This document shows positions 3,036-61,948 of a stretch of 64,000 bases of DNA, piece by piece. Source of the stretch: Rhodosorus marinus CCMP1338 (taxonomy: Eukaryota; Plantae; Rhodophyta). The notes under the pieces were generated by a model, which searched no databases, was not told the DNA's origin, and saw only the letters and a program-made list of their open reading frames with translations. How positions within the stretch are numbered: the first letter of the stretch is position 1; each line of letters starts with the position of its first letter. Made by a program: the position numbers and the translations under genes. The stretch lies in contig JAMWBK010000012.1 of assembly GCA_029953675.1 (NCBI GenBank), positions 868,001 to 932,000 of the forward strand. The letters run 5' to 3'.

Positions 3036-3435
3036 TCTTCGTCAAATCATCGGATCTAATCCAACCTTTCCCTCCTCATCAAACTTCATCAATCGTCCTT
3101 TTCCTCCACCACTTCCTCAATATCTTTAACCTCACTCAACAACTTCCTCTAGATGTTAAGCTGAAAATCTCTTTCTTATCCTCTTACGGTGTTTCTTCTT
3201 TCTTTCTTCAGCGTAATCCTCGCCAACCGAAATCTTCGTCAAATCATCGGATCTAATCCAACGTTTCGCTCCTCATCAAACTGTCATCAATCGTCCTTTA
3301 CCTCCACGACTTCCTCAAGATCTTTAACCTCCCTCAACCACTTCCTCTAGATGTTAATCTAAAAATCTCTTTCTTATCCTCCTACTGTGTTTCTTCTTTC
3401 TTTCTTTAGCGTAACCCTCGCCAACCGAAATCTTC
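3036..3435. repeat. Two-copy tandem duplication, period about 197 bp
   Basis: TCTTCGTCAAATCATCGGATCTAATCC starts at 3036 and again at 3233; similarity continues to ...CCAACCGAAATCTTC with scattered substitutions. Confidence 0.9.
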
Positions 3436-12193: not shown

Positions 12194-13098
12194 TGAGCTT
12201 TATTGGGCAGTCGCCTAATGCGACGTAACACTAAGCCGATTGCTATCTAGGGAATCACTCACAACAACCCCGCTACCGGGGTCTCATGCTACGTTCAAAA
12301 GAAAAAACAGGAACCAGTGGGTTCTCCAACTGGTCCGCACGTAGAGCGCCAAGCGCAATCGCCGCGTTGCCCTGCCATAGGATCCTGTTTAACTGGGATC
12401 GTGCATCCCTCAGCTCCTCATCTCGATGCAACAAGTGTTTACAACTGTCCCGCAAAAAGTCTTGCGTCAACCTCCCGCTCCGCCCAAAGGTCTCTATCGC
12501 GATCGGGATGAACTTCTCCTCGGGCTTTTCCACACTCATCGCCTCTTTATAGTGCGCGAGCTTGTAGTTCTCCGCCAGTTTCGCTGCATACCCGTTTTCT
12601 GCACTGCCACGCCTTATGTACTTTTCCTGTAGCGGTGAAATCACCGTCACATCGATCGCGTACTTTTGAAAGGTCTTTGGATGGGTCGCCACTATATCTG
12701 GTCGCAGCTGGTAATTCTCAAAATACCTCTGCGGTTCTTGCTGTATGTCAAGAAAATTCCATCGGTTGAGCCATCTCCCTAGCTCCGTACAGAGCTCGTC
12801 GTGCCGTCTCTGCCATAGTCCCGTCGATGTTGGACAGTGTTGAAATCGTTGCACCCCATTTGGGCCATGTTTCCTACGGCAACTGGTGCACTGCTCCGTT
12901 GTCCGCAACCCCGGAATCGGCAGCCCCAGCAGTTGTCGAACATTTACCTGCAATTCCTGTGAGTCCAGCTTTCTCGGCTCTAGCAACGGTAGTTCCCGCA
13001 GCCATACCCCCGAACCCGAGCCGGCCGCCGATCGGATTCTTGCACGGTGTTCATGCGAAACGCCCTCGTTGCCGACCAAACGTTGGAACGCGCGATGG
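12194..13098 (-). mobile_element. 5'-truncated CRE-like RLE non-LTR retrotransposon (a different family from the 47-64 kb nest)
   Basis: ORF 13079-12273 has CxxC...HC zinc knuckle (CTSC/HC), RRHD, RPD, D(VTV), K and IETFG motifs. AATAAA lies 5 nt before the 3' junction. The element is flanked by the 22-bp direct repeat TAACCCCAGACTAACGTAACCG at 12172-12193 and 13099-13120. Confidence 0.9.
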
Positions 13099-43619: not shown

Positions 43620-44160
43620 CCCACGCCTGCACAACGTCGCGGTGGGTACCTCTGGTTCAATGCGCCGACTGAAGGAGTCTCAGTACGCTGAGGTGATGAC
43701 TCAGCCAACCTCCTGTAACTCGGGGATCGTCTCATCGGTTTGCACCACTGGTCATCGAGTCCTTTGTTGTTTTAGACAGTGCTGCTTTTCGCTGGCTCCG
43801 TGATTTTCTGCTATAATGCCCCTGGCCGTCTTGACAGCCTCCTCACGGAGCCGTCTCTGAATCTCTGGCATGCGAACGCTGACTTTTTGTCGTTGGACGC
43901 GCCGCGTCATCAGCGTCTCCCTTTCCGCTCCTCAGGATAGTAGTTAGGCTTTGAATAAATGGATGATGATTGATAGGCGGGTAGGTTCTCGTTGGCTTAA
44001 TGCTCTCTTTCGTAGCGACCCAGGGCGCCTCGATAGCCTCCTCACGGAGCTGTCCTTGAAACTCTGTCGTTCAAACGCCGCTGTCTTGCTGGACGCGCGT
44101 CATCAGCGTCTTGTTTCTAGCTTTTCAGGATAGTTAGGCTCTGAATACACTGATCATCAC
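43620..44160 (+). mobile_element. Two tandem, diverged 3' fragments of the CRE-like family A
   Basis: Both end CAGGATAG(TAG)TTAGGCT(T/C)TGAATA...GAT(GAT/CAT) and encode the RLE C-terminus (LTELSL.L...NA..LLDARHQRL). Confidence 0.85.
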
Positions 44161-45562: not shown

Positions 45563-46527
45563 ATGGAGAACCGAAGGACTTTGGCCGTTTTAGGAGCGCG
45601 TGGAGTGGGTGAGTCACTTCACTCAGAGAGTAACCAGAACGTGGAGATTGTATTTCTTTCGCGCTGATCACGGAACCGCGCTTTTTCTCCATCAACCCCA
45701 CAATCCAGGAAAGTCATCGGTCGTCGAGAGATTCTGCTACAACCGTTTCTATGACAACTACAACCCGACTATTATGGTAAACGCTGCCATCTGCTACCAC
45801 GCTACCACCACACCCATCAAGGGCAGCACTGGCACGCAACCAGGCATCTGATCCGATCCAACTGCGCGCGTGTCTTCTTCCCATTCTTTCTACAGGCAAT
45901 GGAGCACGTAACTCTGAAGATTGACGGCAAACAGTATCAATGTGACATTATGGATCCAGTGAGCCATTTCATTCAGTTCACCTAGCATTTGTCTCTTTCC
46001 CGACGCTCTCGAGGTTGCCACCCTCTGGCCGGCTCAGATTTGTCCAACCCCGCGATTTTTAGCTGGCGGTCTCGTGCTTGCATCTCTACCCTACGCTTCT
46101 GACGCTTGCTAAACCTCCTCCTCAACTTGGCTGGATTCGTTGGTGTTAGGCCGGACAGGATGATTTCTCGACTCTTGGGCCGAACGTAACGATTGGAGTT
46201 CATGGATACATTCTGGTGTTCTCTGTGAGGGAGAGGGGATCATTTGAGATGCTTCCAGGCTTGAACAGTAATCTTCTGGTAGCCTTGAGTGGTCAGAAGG
46301 TACCGACGCTTCTGGTTGGGAACCAGAGCGACTGCGGTACTAATGAAAGGCAGGTGTCGGTGGAGGAGGGAAAGCAACTTGGAAAGGAATTGAAGATTAA
46401 CTATGTAGAGTGCTCGGCGAAGAGCGGAGAAGGTGTGAAGGAGGTTTTCGTCACCCTCCTCAGGGATGTGAACCGTACAATTGCTGACGAAGTCGTCGAT
46501 GAAGGATTCAAGTGCAGTATCAGCTGA
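45563..46527 (+). CDS. RHEB: Rheb-like small GTPase, 4 exons
   Basis: MENRRTLAVLGARGVG|KSS (Arg at the Ras-G12 position), YNPTI, DIMDP|AGQDD, HGYILVFSV, LVGNQSD, ECSAK, CaaX-type end CSIS. Confidence 0.85.
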
Positions 46528-47375: not shown

Positions 47376-47669
47376 CTCTTGGGTCGCACATCGTAGCTAG
47401 GAGAGTACCGGTAGTTTTTGGTAGTTCCAGTTCCACCATTCTGTTTATTCAGAGCCAAGCTACCATGAGAAGCGAGAAACAAGCTGATGACGCATGTCCA
47501 ACAATAAAGCAGTGTTGGAACTCCACAGAGATGAAGTAGTTAGTGTTAGCTGATGAGTTGTCACACGCTGTGACTCCCCTTTCCTTCTCGTACGACACCC
47601 AACTGGGGTCGTTAGTTTTCCAGTGAACCAGAGCAGGCTCAAAGAAGCGTACATGCGGGAACGGAACAT

Positions 47670-47900: not shown

Positions 47901-48389
47901 TTTTCAGAATTCACGTGGAGGGGAGAAGACCCAGACCAAACTTCCAGAGGGTGGAAGACATCATCCTCCGATTACTATCAGTCGATATAAATATTGAGGA
48001 AGAAGAGGTGGCGATTGAAGCTGCTGTCGGAACAGTTTGAAACAGTCAGAGTAACCAGCTTGGGTAGGAAGTATTCTCGTTCGCCAGACTACGAAGCGAT
48101 TAAAGAATACACGCGCAGATAACAAATGCTCTGAATACGCAGTCGATGATAACAAGTGCTTAACCACAACGCAATGATTGCAGCCGGCAAGGCCAAGAAA
48201 ACCAGAAACAATTGCATTAAAAAAAGGGCAACAGCCAGGGCGTCTTGATAGCCTCACGGAGCTGTCTTTGACCCTCTGGTGTTCCAACGCTGCTTTATCG
48301 TTGGACGCGCGTCATCAGCGTCTTGTCTCTAGGTTCTCAGGGTAGTTAGGCCGTGGGTAGTTAGGCTCTGAATAAACGGAGTAGTAAAA

Positions 48390-48620: not shown

Positions 48621-48939
48621 AGATCTCTGTTTTTTATTTTTCAGAGCCTAGCTACCCTGAGAAGCGAGAAACAAGACGCTGATGACGCGCGTCCAACGAT
48701 AAATCTCTTCACGTTCACTAAAAGCCTAACTACCCTGAGAAGCGAGAGACAAAGCGCTGACGACGCGCGTCTACAAACAAAGCAGCATTTGAGCGCCACG
48801 GGGTCAAAGAAAGCTCCGTGACCAGACTATCTAGACGCCCTGGGTCGTTGCGAAAGATACCTCGCAGCCAGCGAGAACCTACACACTTTCAAGCGGCAAC
48901 CCCACGCCCCAGGTCGTAAGCTTACACGAAGTTCGAGCT

Positions 48940-49965
48940 TGGGTTGGGCGCGATTGAGTTTGTTCGCGATCTTCGTGTGAGCTGCCATCTTTCTGCGGCT
49001 GTTCCTCGCCTTTCCCGGCGTTTCCGGGTCGTCCGCGAAGTGTTTTTTGGGTTGTTTTGGTCTGGGAAGGTGGTCTGGGAAGGTGGGAAGGGGGTAGGGG
49101 ATTGGTCTCATCTTGGCGTTGCTGTTTTGTTGGGCGATATTTCGGTCATCGGCGGTGCTTGTGGGGTTCACCTGGGCCACTCTTCCCCCAGCGTCCCTCT
49201 GAATTTCCGCTTCAGATGGTTTCGTCAACTGCCTCTCCGCAGTCAGTGGAGCTAGGACTCGGGAGATTCGGCACACTCGCCGAGCTACCAGGTTGCACCA
49301 AGGCTACTGCGGAAGCCTTAGTTGTCCAAATTACTCGCGCTGTTGCTGCTGCTGCTAAAGCCAACCGCCTCGCGGAGCTCGCTTCCACCCTGACTGCTTT
49401 TGCCGATGCCCAGTGCCCCGATGCCACGACGGTGGCCGCCGATGTCCCACTTGCGCGTGTCCCATCTGGGACAAACGCGGTTGCGACAGCTGTCCATGAG
49501 ACAGCTGTCCTCCCGAACCGATCTCGTCTGGGCGACTCATCTGTATCTGGTGATGATCCGTTTATTCAGAGGCTCTGGTCCCGTGCCCCCTGCCGCCGCT
49601 ACCCGCCCGGTGCGGCCTTCCTACTCCCAAGTGCTCCGTCGTGGGTCCGTCGAGGCCCGCGCGGAGGCCCTGGTACGTACATTCGATGATCCGTTTACGT
49701 ACATCCACTGCTGAGCCTGCCGTTGACTCTGTTCAACGGACCATATCTCCTCTCCGCTGGGTCTTGATGGCCAACGTGGGGCCCCAGCGCTCCTCGCGCT
49801 CCGGGGCCCGCATTCCTGTTCGCGATTTTCGTGACACGATGGCCTCGTGTCTCGGCGCGTCGCCCCGCGATTTTCTCTACGTTGCTTTTTCGGGACCCCA
49901 TGCTTGCTTCTTGGTGACAGATACTGCGCACCAAATCCTAGCTACTTTGTTGAAAACGCCTCCTT
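48940..49965 (+). mobile_element. Putative 5' UTR and N-terminal ORF of CRE family A (ATG 49216), interrupted by micro-insertions
   Basis: The segment 48940-49243 is repeated in inverted orientation at 52765-53053, directly upstream of RT. Removing the inserts at 49552 and 49683, each with one TSD copy, restores one frame: MVSSTASPQ...SVSG|PVPP...SYSQVLRRG...LVRT|STAEP... Confidence 0.65.
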
Positions 49966-50825
49966 GTCCGTTTATTCAGAGGCAAACTACCCTGAGAAGC
50001 GAGAGACAAGACGCTGATGACGCGCGTCTACAAACAAACCAGAATTGGAGCGCCACAGGGTCAAAGAAAGCTCCGTGGGCAGACTATCTAAACGCCCTGG
50101 GTCGTTGCGAAACGGAGCTCGCAGCCAGCGAGAACCTACACTATCTATTCATGAGCTTTCTTTGACCCTGTGGCGCTCCAATCCCGCTTTGTTTGTGGAC
50201 GCGCGTCATCAACGTCTTGTCTCTCGCTTCTCAGGGTAGTTAGCCTCTGAATAAACGGATCATCATCTATCAAGCCAAAACACTCAATAATGAGGGGGAC
50301 GAACCGGTATGTCACCGCCGAATCGCGAAAGGTAGGGTTTGACATCGCTGCCGCGTACTGCGAATCTTTCACTTGCGGCATGCACCGAGCTGCAGATCCT
50401 CGACGCCGAGCCGACGCAGTCTTTTTAACCACAGACTAATCGCAGTGAGTACGTTGACCTCTCCATCCCTTGTCCTCAGGCGACTAGGTACCTGCCTGCG
50501 TCGGCTCGGCGTCGAGGAGCTGCAGCTCGGTCCATGCGGCAAGTGAAAGATTCGCAGTACGCGGCAGCGATGTCAAACCCTACCTTTCGCGATTCGGCGG
50601 TGACATACCGGTTCGTCCCCCTCATTATTGAGTGCTTTGGCTTGATAGATAGTGTAGGTTCTCGCTGGTTGTGAGCTCTGTTTCGCAACGACCCAGGGCG
50701 TCTAGATAGTCTGCTCACGGAGCTTTCTTTGACCGTGTGGCGCTCCAATTCTGCTTTGTTTGTGGACGCGCGTCATCAGCGTCTTGTCTCTCGCTTCTCA
50801 GAGTAGTTAGCCTCTGAATAAACGG

Positions 50826-52790
50826 ATCATCAAGTTCGAGATCGGTAAGCGCCAACCGCGGATACGCAGGTATGACCGTGAAGAAACGGGAGCTGAGACT
50901 CCCCCCAAACCGCGCAGGCGATCCAAAGTCGATGCCGAGCACGAAGGTAAACTCAGAAGGGTGGCATACGAGTCCCGATGTATTTCCCACGACAGGGTTT
51001 TTTGGATTGCATCGGTCCGCGAAGGGGCCGGACCCGACCGGGAAACGCCCTCCTCTGGCGGTCTCGACGGCACAGCCACGGGGTCAATATCCTCGGCAGT
51101 TTCTACACCATTTCCAACACACGGTGCTGCAGCAGGGACTCCCGAACGCTGGCCACCGAGTGAGTCAAGAGCTGCCGCCCAGGAATCGCAACGAGCCCGG
51201 GTACCACTCGGCAGGGCGGTACATTGTTGAAAAGCGGCCTCCACTCCGCACCCGCAAAACCCCCCCGAGTGGGGCGAGAGTCCCGTCCAGCCGCCCAACC
51301 CGAAATCCACTCAACAAACCACTCACATGCGGATCACACTCTGTAGACCATGTATTAAGCGCATTGGCCCACGCACTCACCACAGCCGCCGGCTGGATCG
51401 CCGCGTAAGATCCCACAGCCAGCCCGCCCAACCGCACGGGCAACGCGATCTGCCGGTGAAGGACGTCCTTTTCTGCATCCCCAAAATAGATAGCTCAGCA
51501 TCCATCAGCGTGCCTAGCACGTCCCTCGCTCGTCGGTCTGCGCGGAGCGCCAGCCAAGACCCCCACTCGGAGGGTAGCTGCGGCAAAAAATAGGTCAACC
51601 TCTGGCACGCGCTGAACCGGAAGATGAGCAGAGCGGGCTGGAGGTACCCTTCTGTGAGACTGCACAGCTCAGTCAGGAGCTCATCATGATGACTAAGGAG
51701 CGCGGAGAGGCTGCGTTCAACAAATATCGGGGTGCCTACGGGGACACCGATCATCATTATCATCATCATCATCATCATCAACAGAAGGAAGCCCTCAGCG
51801 CGCCAAATATCTCGGAACCTGGATGGAACCGCGTTCGCGGTGCAGTGAGACCCCCCCCAGAAATCGCACTTGGCATGGTTGATACGCAGCCCCACCAAGG
51901 AAGCCACCTCGCCGAGAAAATCGTAGGCCGGCACCAGATCGTCGGGAGTGCCAAGAAGCGTCACATCGTCATGGAAGGCGACCGCACGGACCCGCGGGAA
52001 CCGATGTTTCAGCCGCAACAGCACCAGTTGCAATCCACAGGCGTGCAGGAACGGCCCGAAGGGATCGCCCTGCTGCACACCTGTATGAGCCGCAAAGGTG
52101 TGGCTCTCGGCACCCAAGGTGACAAATCGGGGCCCGTTCGGCGCTTCACCATATACGCGGCGTGAGAACGGAAAGCCAGAGGGGAAAAGCTGACGAACTA
52201 CCTCAAGCGCGTGTGCTCGAGACACACTGTTAAACGCATTGGCGAAATCCACAGAAAGCGTGCCCAAGGGCTCATCGCGGAGACCGTCCAGCTGCAGGAT
52301 ACGCGTCACCGTTCACAACCACCTGAATAGCCGACACCGACCTGGGTCAACCCAAAAAAACCCCTGGCCTCCCTAGTGAGCTGACTCGATAGAAAGCGGC
52401 TCGCCAGCTTCCGCAATGCTTCGCACATTCCGATTGGCCGAAGGGAAGGTGTCTGGTCTGAATGTCCAGGCTTGGGCAAGAGGACCAGTTGGGGGTGCGA
52501 CAATAGTGCCCGGGCCTCTGCGCAAAAATCGTCCCCATTGACAAGACCCTCCAGTACCCGCGCAAGGGCGTCCAGCCCTTCTTCACCCAAGCAGTGAAAA
52601 AGTTCGCCCCGGAGTCCTGAGGGACCAGGTGCACGACCTTTCGGGGCGGACCTAAGCAGAGCCTGAACCTCATCCGGCCGAACAAACAACCGACCCCTAC
52701 CGCGTGAGGAATCGACAAAAGGATCTAAGACACGCTGGAACTCAGAGTTCCAACTCACGTCGCTGGGGAGAGGCAGTTGACGAAACCATC
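50826..52790 (-). mobile_element. CRE-type reverse transcriptase and thumb region (frameshifted)
   Basis: APGPSGLRGE, LRPIGMCEALRKL, QVGVGYSGGCE, VDFANAFNSVSR, GVQQGDPFGP, AFHDD, GLRINHAKC, GVPVG, LPVRLGGL. Confidence 0.95.
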
Positions 52791-53287
52791 TGAAGCGGAA
52801 ATTCAGAGGGACGCTGGGGGAAGAGTGGCCCAGGTGAACCCCACAAGCACCGCCGATGACCGAAATATCGCCCAACAAAACAGCAACGCCAAGATGAGAC
52901 CAATCCCCTACCGGAACCACCTTCCCAGACCAAAACAATCCAAAAAACCCTTCGCAGACGACCCGGAAACGCCGGAAAAGGCGAGGAACAGCCGCAGAAA
53001 GATGGCAGCCCACACAAAGATCGCGAACAAACTCAATCGCGCCCGACCCAGCTAACAAAACCCCTCTGTGTGTTTACCTTCGTGCTCGGCGTTTACCTTG
53101 ATGATGATGATCCGTTTATTCAGAGACTAACTACCCTGAGAAGCGCGAAACAAGACGCTGACGACGCGCGTCCACAAACACGGTTTACCTTCGTGCTCGG
53201 CGTCGACTTTGGCTCGCCTGCGCGGTTTGGGGGGGAGTCTCAGCTTCCGTTTCTTCACGGTCATACCTGCGTATCCGCGGTTGGCGC

Positions 53288-53830: not shown

Positions 53831-54109
53831 GTGCTTTGGCTTGATAGATGAAGATCCGTTTATTCAGAGGCTATCTACCCTGAGAAGCGAGAGACAAGAC
53901 GCTGATGACGCGGGTCCACAAACAAAGCCGAATTGGAGCGCCACAGGGTCAAAGGAAGCTCCGTGAGCAGACTATCTAAACGCTCTGGGTCGTTGCGAAA
54001 CAGAGCTCGCAGCCAGCGAGAACCTACACTATCTATCAAACCAAAGCACTCAACAATGAGGCGGGAGGGGGGGTGGGAGAGTTTGATGATCCGTTTATTC
54101 AGAGTTTCG

Positions 54110-55330
54110 TGGAGCGCAACCTTCGAGCGCTGCTGAGCCGCGATGAGCTCTTGAATGAGCTATGCCGCCTACCGGAGGGGCACCACCAGCCGCTCTGCTC
54201 GTTTTCAGGTTCAGTGCGTGTCAACGCCTGAACTATTTTCTGCGGCAGCTCCCTTCGACGTGGTGGGCTTGGCTAGCCCTTCGCGCTGATCAGCGTGCGA
54301 GGGACGTTTTGAGCACACTGGTGGACGCAGACCTCTCTACTCTAGGGGAGAACGAACAGACTGTCCTTCACCGCCAGCTGGCCTTGCCTGTGCTCATGGG
54401 CGGACTAGCCGTGGGGACTTATGCAATAATCCAACCGGCGGCCGTGGTGAGCTCTTGGGCAAATACTTTAACTACTTGGTCTAAGGAGAGCAATCCCGCC
54501 GTGCGTGGTTCGTTACGAGGCCTCCGTGAGGGGCAAATGCGGTCCCTCTGCCCGTGGCCACGGCAATTACTGATACGGCTGACGCACCAGGGGTGCAGCG
54601 GGTGGCGATGACCTAGTAGTGACTGATCTCAGCGCCCGTCGGAGTGAGTACGTTTACCTTTCTATTCCTTGTCCTCAGGCGACCAGATACCTACCCGCAT
54701 CTGCACGCTGCGGTGGCGCTGCGGCTCGGTCAATGCGGCAACTGAAGAAGTCCCAGTACGCCGCAGCTATGTTGGACTCTACGCTCCGCGATTCGGCCTT
54801 GTCCTATCGGTATGTTCCACTCATCATCGAGTCCTTTGGTTTAGTTGATTGTGTAGGCTCTCGCTGGCTTCGTGGGCTCTTTCGTCACAGCCCAAGTCGT
54901 CTTTATAGCCTCCTCACGGAGATGTCCTTGACCTCATGGCGTTCCAACGCGGCTTTACTGTTCGACGCGCGTCATCAGCGTCTTGTTTCTCGCTTGTCAG
55001 GGTAGTTAGGCTCTGATAAACTGATGATGAATCAGCCCCTGGTGACGCGTTGGCACGAAGAACCCAACCGTTGGCGCCGCTAACGATGCACCAAGTAGTT
55101 CAGCAAGGAGACCGACTGGGACCGGTCCTGCACGCACTAGCTCTATTTCCCGTTCTTTACCACCTGCGGCGGCAGTTCCGGGATGTCACTGTATTGGCGT
55201 TTCATGACGACATCTCGCTTGCAGCACAGGTACAGCAACTGGATTCGGCCTTACGATGGAGCCACGAACACTTGCGCAGGATTGGGGCGCAGCTGCAATT
55301 CGCATAGTGCACCATCTTGCACCATCCGGA
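54110..55330 (+). mobile_element. Older, diverged CRE subfamily fragments (thumb, RLE 3' end, RT core)
   Basis: ACQRLNYFLRQLP...LPVLMGGL; IIESFG...SRLSG*; VQQGDRLGP...LAFHDD at 55050-55307. Confidence 0.8.
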
Positions 55331-55451
55331 GGTTGTCCCAGAGCTGGACCAACAAACAAACCTCGCCAGCCTCGCGCAGTCAACTTGGGTCTCCATAGCC
55401 TAGCCACTCCTGTTTTGATGATCCGTTTATTCACACCCTCATGTTTTCGAT

Positions 55452-56440
55452 CGATCCATTTATTCAGAGGCTAACTACACTGAGAAGCGAGAGACAAGAC
55501 GCTGATGACGGGCGTCCACAACCAAAGCAGAATTGGAGCGCCACAGGGTCAAAGAAAGCTCCGTGAGCAGACTATCTAAACGCCCGGGGTCGTTGCGAAA
55601 CAGAGCTCGCAGCCAGCGAGAACCTACACTATCTATCAAGCCAAAGCACTCGATAATGAGGGGACGAACCGGTATGTCACCGCCGAATCGCGAAAGCTAG
55701 GGCTTGACATCGCTGCCGCGTACTGCGAATCTTTCACTTGCCGCATGGACCGAGCTGCAGCTCCTCGACGCCGAGCCGACGCAGGCAGGTACCTGGTCGC
55801 CTGAGGACAAGGGATGGAGAGGTCAATGTACTCACTGCGACGCGCATTGAGGTCAGTCACAACGAGATCCGCCACCCGCTGTACCGTTGGGGCGTCACTC
55901 TCATCAGCAATTTCCGATGCCCCCGCCAGAGCGACCTCATACTCCACTTCTCGGTCCGTACCGAGAGATTGAGAACGAAGGTAGCGGAAAAGCAAGCGGT
56001 TCAGCCGCGTATGGCGTCTGGTCCGGGCCCCTTGAACCTCCGCACAAGACGCCAACAGATGCGCACCATAATCACCCCACGGCACATTGGCCCCGCACAA
56101 TGCGCATCTAGAATCCCGCTCAACAGGCCAAGGGGGTTGCGGCAAGCCGAGGTAAAGTCGTAAGCTTACACGAAGTTCGAGATCGGTAAGCGCCAACCGC
56201 GGATACGCAGGTAAGACAGTGAAGAAACGCGAGCTGAGACTCCCCCCAAACCGCGCAGGCGAGCCAAAGTCGACGCCGAGCACGAAGGTAAACTCAGAAG
56301 GGTGGCATACGGGTCCCGATGTATGTCGCACGAAAGGGTTTTTTGGATTACATCGGTGCTCGAAGGGGCCGAACCCGACCGGGAAACGCCCTCCTCTGGC
56401 GGTCTCGACGGCACAGCCACGGCGTCAATACGCCGATCAC
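55452..56440 (-). mobile_element. About 1-kb 3' fragment of family A (RLE domain to tail)
   Basis: ORF 55636-56331 encodes LRVSLRLYLGLP...CALC...RH...ADL...KDSQY...RFVP; the 3' terminus is at 55452-55480. Confidence 0.9.
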
Positions 56441-58075: not shown

Positions 58076-59318
58076 GCCAACCTCCTGTTTACCCGTAGTA
58101 TCTCTAGCGCTACATTCGGTAGTTGGAGTAAGCGGAAACAGTAAAATCCAATTGTTCCCTATAGAAGGTAGTCTTCTGCCCACTCTGGGGTCTCCTTAAC
58201 CTAGCCCCTACTGTTTTCCTTGCGTATCTTTAGCGCTACATTCATCGCGTATGCGCAAGCGATGTCAAACCCTACCTTTCGCGATTCGGCGGTGACATAC
58301 CGGTTTGTCCCCCTCATTATTGAATAATAATGAGGGGGACAAATAGAATGCTTTGGCTTGATAGATAGTGTAGGTTCTCGCTGGCCGTGAGGTGTCTTTC
58401 GCAACGACCCAGGGCGTCTAGATAGTCTGCTCACGGAACTTTCTTTGACCTTCTGGCGCTCAAATGCTGCGTGCTTTGTTTGTAGAGTCCCGTCATTAGC
58501 GTCTTGTCTCTCGCTTCTCAGGGTAGTTAGGCTGTGAATAAACGGATGATCATCATCATCAGGAAACAGTAAAACCCAGTATAGTAAAAACCAGTTGAGG
58601 ATGCGGGCTTTCTCCCTACGCTAATTGAGCAAATCGCCCGATGGGGAGGACTGAGATTGGCAACAAGAAAACGAGTCCAGCCCATCCATCGCCTTCCACT
58701 CGGCCTGGGCCCAGACCTATCCTCCGAATGAGGGTGAGTGGCCCAGCCACCTAACCCACTTATCCAGGAAATGTCACCTCGGGGGTACCCTCGACGCCCG
58801 AGCCCTCCACAAGCTTAGTTCCTCTACCGAAGCACTAGTGGGACAAATCATCGCCGTCGCAGCAGCACCACTCCGACGCCTTCGACGTGACGCTCCGGAG
58901 CGCATTAGGAGACTCGCCAAGCTCCGCGACCTGGTCTGAATAAACGGATCATCACCTGGCCCCTGGCCCAGCTACGAACTCCCCAATCGATTCCCAACCT
59001 TGGAAGCACGGTCGATTCAACAAACCCTCTCACAATAGGCTCGCCACCACGCTCTCAACTCCTCCTTCAGGTTTATTCAGAGCCTAACTACCCTGGGAAG
59101 CGAGAGACAAGACGTTAAAGCCTACCTTTCGCGATTCGGCGGTGACATACCGGTTCGTCCCCCTCATTATTGAGTGCTTTGGCTTGCTAGATAGCGTAGG
59201 TTCTCGCTGGCTGCGAGCTCTGTTTCGCAACGACCCAGGGCGTTTAGATAGTCTGCTCACGGAGCTCTTTTTGACCCTGTGGCGCTCCAATTCCTCTTTG
59301 TTTGTGGACGCGCGTCGT

Positions 59319-59886
59319 CAGCGTCTTGTCTCTCGCTTCTCAGGGTAGTTAGCCTCTGAATAAACGGATCGGATGACCCGCGTATACAAACAAATCAGCA
59401 TTTGATCTCCACAGGGTCAAAGAAAGCTCAGTGAGCAACTATCTTAACGCCCTGGGTCGTTGCGAAAGATACCCCGCAGCCAGCGAGAACCTATACTATC
59501 TCGATAGATTTATCAAGCCAAAGCATTCAATAATGAGGGGACAAACCGATATGTCACCGCCGAATCGCGAAAAGTAGGGTTTGACATCGCTGATTTCATC
59601 CACGCATCAGCGTCTTGTCTCTCGCTTCTCAGGGTAGTTAGCCTCTGAATAAACGGATCGGATGACCCGCGTATACAAACAAAGCAGCATTTGATCGCAC
59701 ACGGCCAAAGAAAGCTCAGTGAGCAACTATCTAGACGCCCTGTGTCGTTGCGAAAGATACCCCGCAGCCAGCGAGAACCTACACTATCTCGATAGATTTA
59801 TCAAGCGAAAGCATTCAATAATGACGGGACAAACCGATATGTCACCGCCGAATCGCGAAAAGTAGGGTTTGACATCGCTGATTTCA
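59319..59886. repeat. 289-bp tandem duplication of a composite (sense 3' end joined to an antisense fragment)
   Basis: CAGCGTCTTGTCTC...GAATAAACGGATCGGATGACCCGCGTATAC...GACATCGCTGATTTCA starts at 59319 and at 59608. Confidence 0.9.
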
Positions 59887-59965
59887 ACCACGTAGTGGAA
59901 AACCCCTGAATTTCCTCCAAAATATCCTTGCTGGGAAATTCGTCGGTTTTCAAGACCGCAGGCCG

Positions 59966-61530: not shown

Positions 61531-61948
61531 TTCAACGTTGGTTGGAAGACCCCCTACTCCTGCCAACGCTTTGAGGAATTGCCTTAGTACTTTTTTACTC
61601 CGTTCATTCCATTCATTCTGGTCGGGGAAAACGGCGAACTGGTCTGGTTCTTGGAAAACGTATGAGTTTGGAGGTTTGCTCGTGTGGATAGTTGTTTTTG
61701 GGGTTGCTTCAAAGGATTTCTTTAGGAATCGGGTGGTGAAGGGTTTTGGTGTCTTATTGTATGTCTTATTCTAGTGCAGCTCTGGTATTATATCGGGTTG
61801 GTAGTTTGGTGTGGACGAGCGAGGACGAGAACTTGGGGAGGGAGGTATTTTGCGAGGGTTTTGGGTAGAATAAGGAAGTTGATTATTTAGTATTCTGTTG
61901 TGATGATCCGTTCCGTTAGAGGTCTGAAGTGAAGTGATAGATTGGAAG

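Follow-up and report, generated by a model that had tools for sequence, protein, structure and literature searches.

Elements of the R2 group (R2, R4/Dong, NeSL, CRE, and Utopia) carry a CCHC motif and a PD-D-K endonuclease on the C-terminal side of their reverse transcriptase (RT) and insert by target-primed reverse transcription (TPRT), which R2-type proteins start by recognising their own 3' UTR RNA. In some members of the group, a short simple-repeat tail replaces poly(A), to be compared with the (ATC)n tail described below. Elements with a restriction-like endonuclease (RLE) mostly target rDNA, microsatellites, or snRNA/SL genes, a habit that is typical but not universal (PMC4640811), and both microhomology of 1-5 nt and non-templated bases have been documented at 5'-truncated R2 junctions (PMC2718515). 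For L1, "very heavily truncated" insertions with target-site duplications (TSDs) have been reported (PMC4398972), abortive retrotransposition is healed via microhomology joining with short TSDs (PMC2912911), and short TSDs accompany 5' truncation (PMC2912911, PMC4398972). Very heavy 5' truncation resolved through microhomology joining is established for LINEs (PMC2912911, PMC2718515, PMC4398972).

The present study concerns a 64,000-nt stretch of the Rhodosorus marinus genome (the window), in which an initial annotation had singled out two insertions containing only the 3' tip of a retroelement. The element of this locus resembles the R2 group in its RT with C-terminal CCHC and PD-D-K endonuclease and its probable use of TPRT, in its 5'-truncated copies with 0-5 nt of microhomology or non-templated bases at the junction (PMC2718515), and in having a target preference. 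It differs from the group in that it is not tied to one host gene, inserting instead at a loose CAC(G/T)|A motif (the bar marks the start of the TSD) that often lies on the antisense strand of its own copies, and also in its (ATC)n tail and its N-terminal region without recognisable zinc-finger or Myb motifs. Heavily 5'-truncated L1 copies and abortive L1 retrotransposition are likewise 3'-anchored and flanked by TSDs, with a first strand ended early and healing by microhomology. However, L1 has an APE endonuclease and a poly(A) tail, whereas the inserts described here keep only 13-22 nt of unique sequence plus the tail, which is below the size normally catalogued.

The retroelement and its coding domains

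The window is eukaryotic with short exons (e.g., a Ras-family exon at 46216-46527) and is gene-rich until about 43 kb; from 47 to 64 kb it forms a dense nest of copies of one retroelement family. Two coding domains of this family were located.

51377-52309, minus strand: RT ORF in copy A, matching Pfam RVT_1 at E=2.1e-8 and exceeding the curated cut-off
55639-56172, minus strand: C-terminal CCHC and restriction-like endonuclease domain (178 aa), best-preserved copy

The closest solved relatives of the RT were R2 proteins (E ~1e-6), followed by L1 ORF2p, and the database relative nearest to the element was an MMETSP transcript (P0001) with 74% identity; an exact look-up of the RT ORF matched no record, and a protein search with a 258-aa host exon gave no match. 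The RT frame runs on downstream into the 178-aa domain, where the motifs CxxC...H....C, RRH, (A/P)D-L, and VD are visible. Searching 1.8 billion representative proteins yielded 18 relatives of this domain, and a profile built from 12 relatives was run against all PDB sequences. Its matches were R2 proteins (9nl2_A, E=2.6e-7, residues 940-1020; 9nl3_A, E=2.9e-5; 9dou_A, E=4.8e-5), with the alignment falling in the R2 C-terminal endonuclease region (residues ~940-1090), and the one PDB match outside R2 proteins was non-significant (E=3.1). Pfam gave no match for the endonuclease domain or for the ORF that hosts the first two tip insertions (49216-49966). In this N-terminal region, no zinc-finger or Myb motif was recognisable, and no homologue was found in the databases searched. 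No Exo_endo_phos match, as would be given by an APE domain, was detected in the 250 aa upstream of the RT or in the 234-aa N-terminal ORF, in a window without an intact full-length copy. The RT and the C-terminal CCHC/RLE domain place the element, on the basis of pairwise and profile matches, in the R2 group as a non-LTR retrotransposon with a predicted restriction-like endonuclease. In the best-preserved copy, the stop codon of the endonuclease domain is followed by a 3' UTR of ~188 nt and then by the (ATC)n tail, and the strand that carries the tip as its 3' end is the sense strand of the RT ORF at 51377-52309.

In addition, a 268-aa ORF between host genes (12273-13079, minus strand), with CCHC/RHD/RPD/D...K endonuclease motifs and 25% identity to the element's domain, probably represents the 3' part of a second, distant R2-group element.

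Longer copies and the truncation series

All copies in the window (~21) are anchored at the tip, with variable 5' truncation and no terminal repeats, what look like inverted repeats being nested antisense copies. Measured on the 982-nt reference 3' region, their lengths are about 13, 16, 17, 19, 22, 56, 60, 72, 112, and 133 nt in the shorter half and about 172, 182, 209, 209, 234, 254, 348, 392, 816, and 982+ nt in the longer half, with a gap between 22 and 56 nt. The following longer copies are needed for comparison.

48938-50831, plus strand: element copy of 1,894 nt, host of micro-inserts 1 and 2, lying in the antisense strand of copy A
50440-50831, plus strand: reference copy, the last 392 nt of the element, ending ...GCCTCTGAATAAACGGATCATC
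53100-53182, minus strand: 72-nt 5'-truncated copy, with the 9-nt TSD GTTTACCTT at 53091-53099 and 53183-53191; target GCACG|AAGGTAAAC
50153-50264, plus strand: 5'-truncated copy of 112 nt, inserted into an antisense copy at the sequence ATCTAT (present at 50143-50148 and 50265-50270); the filler measures 4 nt

The host copy at 48938-50831 is bounded by the 9-nt TSD AAGTTCGAG (48929-48937 and 50832-50840) and breaks the antisense copy exactly at AAGTTCGAG (target ACACG|AAGTTCGAG). It comprises a 5' UTR of the copy-A type, an ORF (49216-49966), inverted 3' fragments that are nested in it, and, at 50440-50831, the 3' end. A 234-nt copy with the TSD AAGGTAA lies at a site paralogous to that of the 72-nt copy (GCACG|AAGGTAAAC). 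Thus, the TSDs of the longer copies measure 9 nt (1,894-nt copy), 9 nt (72-nt copy), 7 nt (234-nt copy), and 6 nt (112-nt copy).

The 5' UTR of the host copy (48936-49242) is 91.5% identical to that of copy A (53053-52763), and the first 15 codons (MVSSTASPQ...) are common to the host ORF and copy A (52745-52789). Copy A then jumps out-of-frame into the RT region, and from this jump the 234-aa N-terminal region seems to have been deleted there. Older sub-families, 75-80% identical, were recognised at 43819-44159, 47440-47528, 48228-48380, and 54107-55030, the last of which still encodes part of the RT. Read in the same orientation, their tail is (GAT)n or (TGA)n, not (ATC)n (e.g., ...GAATAAATGGATGATGAT at 43962 and ...GATAAACTGATGATGA at 55022). 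At 59118-59892, a tip-ended copy is joined straight to an inverted copy that starts 52 nt from the tip (979|927 junction), a fold-back-like arrangement of which a ~288-nt unit is tandemly duplicated (59318-59604 and 59607-59892, 96% identical). Two tandem copies of a ~200-nt unit (3036-3435, 93% identical) in the gene-rich part are unrelated to the retroelement.

Tip-only insertions and their target-site duplications

The two TSD-flanked inserts that the initial annotation had placed at 49546-49579 and 49674-49704 were confirmed to the base, and the sequence of which they were said to be the reverse complement is indeed the terminus of the element, the tip being common to ~15 longer copies between 47 and 64 kb. 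These inserts and the other tip-only fragments in the window are as follows.

49546-49551: left TSD copy of micro-insert 1, TCTGGT
49552-49573, minus strand: micro-insert 1, 22 nt, GATGATCCGTTTATTCAGAGGC on the forward strand, identical to the terminal 22 nt of the element (minus-strand sequence GCCTCTGAATAAACGGATCATC)
49574-49579: right TSD copy of micro-insert 1, TCTGGT; element-strand target GCACGGG|ACCAGA
49674-49682: left TSD copy of micro-insert 2, TACGTACAT
49683-49695, minus strand: micro-insert 2, 13 nt, TCGATGATCCGTT on the forward strand (AACGGATCATCGA on the minus strand), tip plus tail variant
49696-49704: right TSD copy of micro-insert 2, TACGTACAT; target AGTGG|ATGTACGTA
54078-54107 with TSDs (insert 54085-54100), minus strand: micro-insert 3, 16 nt of tip between copies of AGAGTTT; target CCACG|AAACTCT
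55411-55447 with TSDs (insert 55417-55441), minus strand: micro-insert 4, a 17-nt tip with 8 nt of filler, flanked by copies of AAAACA
58929-58959 with TSDs (insert 58935-58953), plus strand: micro-insert 5, 19 nt of tip between copies of ACCTGG; target CCGCG|ACCTGG
61902-61913, minus strand: orphan tip fragment of 12 nt without a TSD, uncertain (an 11-mer is expected ~0.03 times by chance)

Tip-only inserts thus make up about a quarter of the copies in the window. An abutting TSD was found at four of the six orphan tips (6, 9, 7, and 6 nt), while at the fifth a 6-nt TSD is accompanied by 8 nt of filler (micro-insert 4, which directly follows the tail of the 982-nt copy; target ...TCG|AAAACA). 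The 3' boundary is fixed at GGATC(ATC)n or a tail variant in all six fragments, and their start positions differ. At the 5' edge, microhomology amounts to 1 nt in insert 1, 0 nt in insert 5, and 4 nt in insert 3 (CTCT, common to the TSD end and the element); the 5' junctions overall show either 0-4 nt of microhomology or 4-8 nt of filler.

Matches to the tip do not occur at chance frequency: its 16-mer was found 17 times against 0.04 expected, far above shuffles. Furthermore, when 11-mers outside alignments of at least 40 nt (orphan 11-mers) were considered, they clustered only on the last ~15 positions of the element (4-6 sites, all within the nest), and the control with internal element positions returned only scattered single chance matches in unrelated sequence. 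An exact flanking repeat of at least 6 nt occurs at ~1% of random sites (slack of +-2 nt) and a 9-nt repeat at ~0.02%; the presence of abutting TSDs at four of six orphans is therefore far beyond chance (probability ~1e-7 for a TSD of at least 6 nt at four of six sites). Apart from the brevity of the 13-nt insert, nothing speaks for a chance resemblance to the tip, and the k-mer enrichment together with the TSD frequency contradicts it, leaving this explanation with a negligible probability.

Origin of the tip-only insertions

The micro-inserts are most probably extreme 5'-truncated copies of the R2-like non-LTR retrotransposon with its RLE. The initial annotation had read them as complete TPRT events that copied only 13-22 nt, and this is the best-supported explanation, three further TSD-flanked tip-only inserts having come to light in the window. 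Additional support comes from the exact 3' anchoring with only the 5' side varying, as in the longer 5'-truncated copies, from the TSDs of 6-9 nt and the CAC(G/T)|A motif, again as in long copies (including that of 1,894 nt), and from the encoded RT and R2-type endonuclease. The TSD size and target motif common to long copies and micro-inserts argue for the element's own TPRT, aborted early.

Under this explanation, the endonuclease would nick the bottom strand opposite G|A, and the freed 3' end, with its last base paired to an A of the AUC tail, would prime reverse transcription from the 3' end of the RNA. Synthesis would end after 13-22 nt, the top strand would be cut 6-9 nt downstream, and the short cDNA would be joined upstream via 0-4 nt of microhomology or a few non-templated bases, with fill-in creating the TSD. 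The product would be an indel of 22-28 bp that shifts the frame of its target, here another copy of the element. The events in the host copy may have been inherited from the progenitor of the 48938-50831 element and thus predate the present copy.

The anchoring and the TSDs also bear on readings that dispense with reverse transcription at the site. An identical inverted tip lies close by (e.g., 50244-50265, 700 bp off), from which templated repair or replication template switching could have copied the fragments. However, all six fragments end at the element's 3' end or tail with the other side alone varying, internal element sequence is not copied likewise, and such events make neither TSDs of 6-9 bp nor the G|A signature common to full insertions, which renders this origin highly improbable. 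Excision footprints of a DNA transposon or MITE, with the tip as its inverted ends, would also show a duplicated target around a few terminal element bases, and a 298-nt imperfect palindrome (49967-50259) does carry the tip at both ends. Nevertheless, this palindrome resolves into the 112-nt copy, flanked by its own TSD, inside an antisense copy. Moreover, footprints presuppose a cut-and-paste element whose TSDs are of one fixed length, and they usually keep both ends, neither of which holds here: an RT and an RLE are encoded, the TSDs range from 6 to 9 nt, a single end is kept, and the copies are 5'-truncated rather than two-ended, so excision is extremely unlikely to account for the inserts.

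The 5' junctions speak to another possibility, namely that longer 5'-truncated copies once occupied these sites and that a later 5' deletion, by slippage between short repeats, left only the tip. The nest is full of deletions, and the CTCT shared at micro-insert 3 would suit such slippage, but at each of five sites the deletion would have had to stop precisely where the upstream TSD ends on its inner side, and inserts 1 and 5 share only 1 and 0 nt there; this history is therefore regarded as very unlikely.

The insert lengths are the evidence on which a variant of the TPRT explanation turns, in which the same machinery would copy short 3'-terminal RNAs of 13-22 nt, either small RNAs or remnants of degraded transcripts, through to their end. 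The jump in insert length from 13-22 nt to 56 nt would suit a distinct pool of short templates, and a structural cause of stalling on a full-length template was not found, the 3' UTR folding no better than shuffles (z=0.74). Yet a fragment of 13-22 nt would be without nearly all of the ~188-nt UTR that R2-type proteins recognise, and the observed lengths (13, 16, 17, 19, and 22 nt) do not fall into a single size class, so that run-off appears unlikely, if the least remote of the alternatives. An RT stall at a 3' UTR structure was itself rejected on the fold score (z=0.74) and because sub-family variants disrupt a small stem near the tip; this small hairpin had no covariation support among the sub-families. 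Two other candidates were discarded. For insert 3, a template jump where the diverged RT copy has its 5' junction was dismissed, since a jump onto an RNA 3' end would require the tip to face the other way. Spliced-leader relics, considered for the 22-nt size, were dismissed in view of the spread in length (13 to 22 nt) and the continuation of the sequence into the 188-nt UTR.

Early-aborted TPRT, as preferred here, makes the micro-inserts a real but ordinary extreme of known 5' truncation rather than a new mechanism. What is particular to this locus is their size of 13-22 nt, their share of about a quarter of the copies, and their origin from an R2-group element without a single host gene.

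Empty sites, reading frame, and (GAT)n runs

No empty site was found, the window containing no paralogue of the host ORF region; the flanks of micro-inserts 3-6 likewise had no uninterrupted paralogue in the window. The host ORF with the inserts removed and joined had no homologue in a protein search, site 1 had no match in the metagenome scan in either its filled or its empty form, and the 20-nt tip had no match in GTDB genomes. The polarity of the events (insertion versus ancestral state) thus rests on the TSDs and the anchoring, given that no empty site was found. A diverged paralogue of the host ORF considered at 58600-59070 was rejected, with two short collinear matches only (E=0.03 and 0.12). 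Exact matches of the 20-nt tip in two metagenome contigs, L001 (434-453) and L002 (3453-3472), were attributed to chance, as the contigs are a near-identical pair, the rest of the element is missing, and a metagenome collection of that size should by chance contain a given 20-mer about once or twice.

The initial annotation had further held that removing each insert with one TSD copy restores a single ORF. A stop-free frame of 233 codons does result (ATG at 49216, to 49966), and a full-length open frame arose in 1% of shuffles. As evidence for insertion, however, the restoration is weak: removing 28 and 22 nt at random opens the frame in 17% of trials, and the test is silent on the duplications because TSDs of 6 and 9 nt are frame-neutral, and therefore the ORF argument adds little.

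The suggestion that the element seeds (GAT)n repeats as a mutagen fared similarly, with one suggestive run that, in the absence of a TSD, is a hint rather than evidence. Eight (ATC)n runs of at least 3 units are present in the window, five of which are element tails. The run in question, LLMMMMMMIMMI at 51749-51779, is a 30-nt in-frame (GAT)n tract in the copy-A RT ORF that the MMETSP homologue P0001 (74% identity) lacks; it reads on the plus strand as a tail-only insert at ACACCG|AACAG, a site that fits the motif.

Target motif and antisense nesting

Both micro-inserts and long copies have TSDs of 6-9 nt and share the loose motif CAC(G/T)|A, in which CACG is recurrent. On the element strand, the targets of the longer copies are ACACG|AAGTTCGAG, GCACG|AAGGTAAAC (twice), and ACACT|ATCTAT. 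An A begins every TSD and a G precedes it, except at the ATCTAT site (ACACT|), where overlap with the tail makes the position of the nick ambiguous. Tails are of variable length because the leading A, AT, or ATC of the TSD can pair with the AUC tail of the RNA. The element does not follow a strict single host sequence, at least eight different targets being in use.

The most unusual feature of the region is not the micro-inserts but the antisense nesting. All 10-11 nested events between 48900 and 58100, micro-inserts included, are antisense to their host copy, with strands running + - + -, and the nest junctions lie at 48937/48938, 50148/50153, 50264/50265, 50831/50832, 53099/53100, 53849/53853, 56453/56454, and 57505/57510. 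Such nesting creates long inverted repeats (e.g., 49967-50259). Three sites on the antisense strand of the element were hit repeatedly, namely ACACG|AAGTTCGAG, GCACG|AAGGTAAAC (inserts of 72 and 234 nt), and ACACT|ATCTAT, the last of which is the border between stop codon and 3' UTR and received inserts of 112, 209, and 816 nt that differ in their junction bases.

Beside the 72-nt insert, the 19-nt sequence GCCGAGCACGAAGGTAAAC (minus strand) is tandemly duplicated (53062-53099 and 53183-53201); rotating the ends by 2 nt places the start of the duplication at GTCG|A. The repeat could be a TSD without retained cDNA, i.e., a zero-length event, or an ordinary duplication.

A broader proposal is that the element homes antisense to its own transcribed copies and, jointly, that many of its attempts (about a quarter in the window) yield no more than an indel of at most 25 nt. 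Homing of this kind might arise, for example, if an R-loop formed by the element RNA exposed the sense strand to the endonuclease. This joint reading is considered unlikely; if it held, the element would be a self-inactivating frameshift mutagen and a builder of inverted-repeat nests.

Implications

The window gives a usable description of an uncharacterised R2-like element, comprising its 3' end, tail, TSD size, and target motif. If the tip-only insertions are general, many retrotransposon scars of 22-28 bp would be missed by repeat annotation and scored as ordinary small indels. Wherever R2-like elements are active, some of a genome's frameshift indels, and some of the decay that these elements undergo, would then be disguised retrotransposition.
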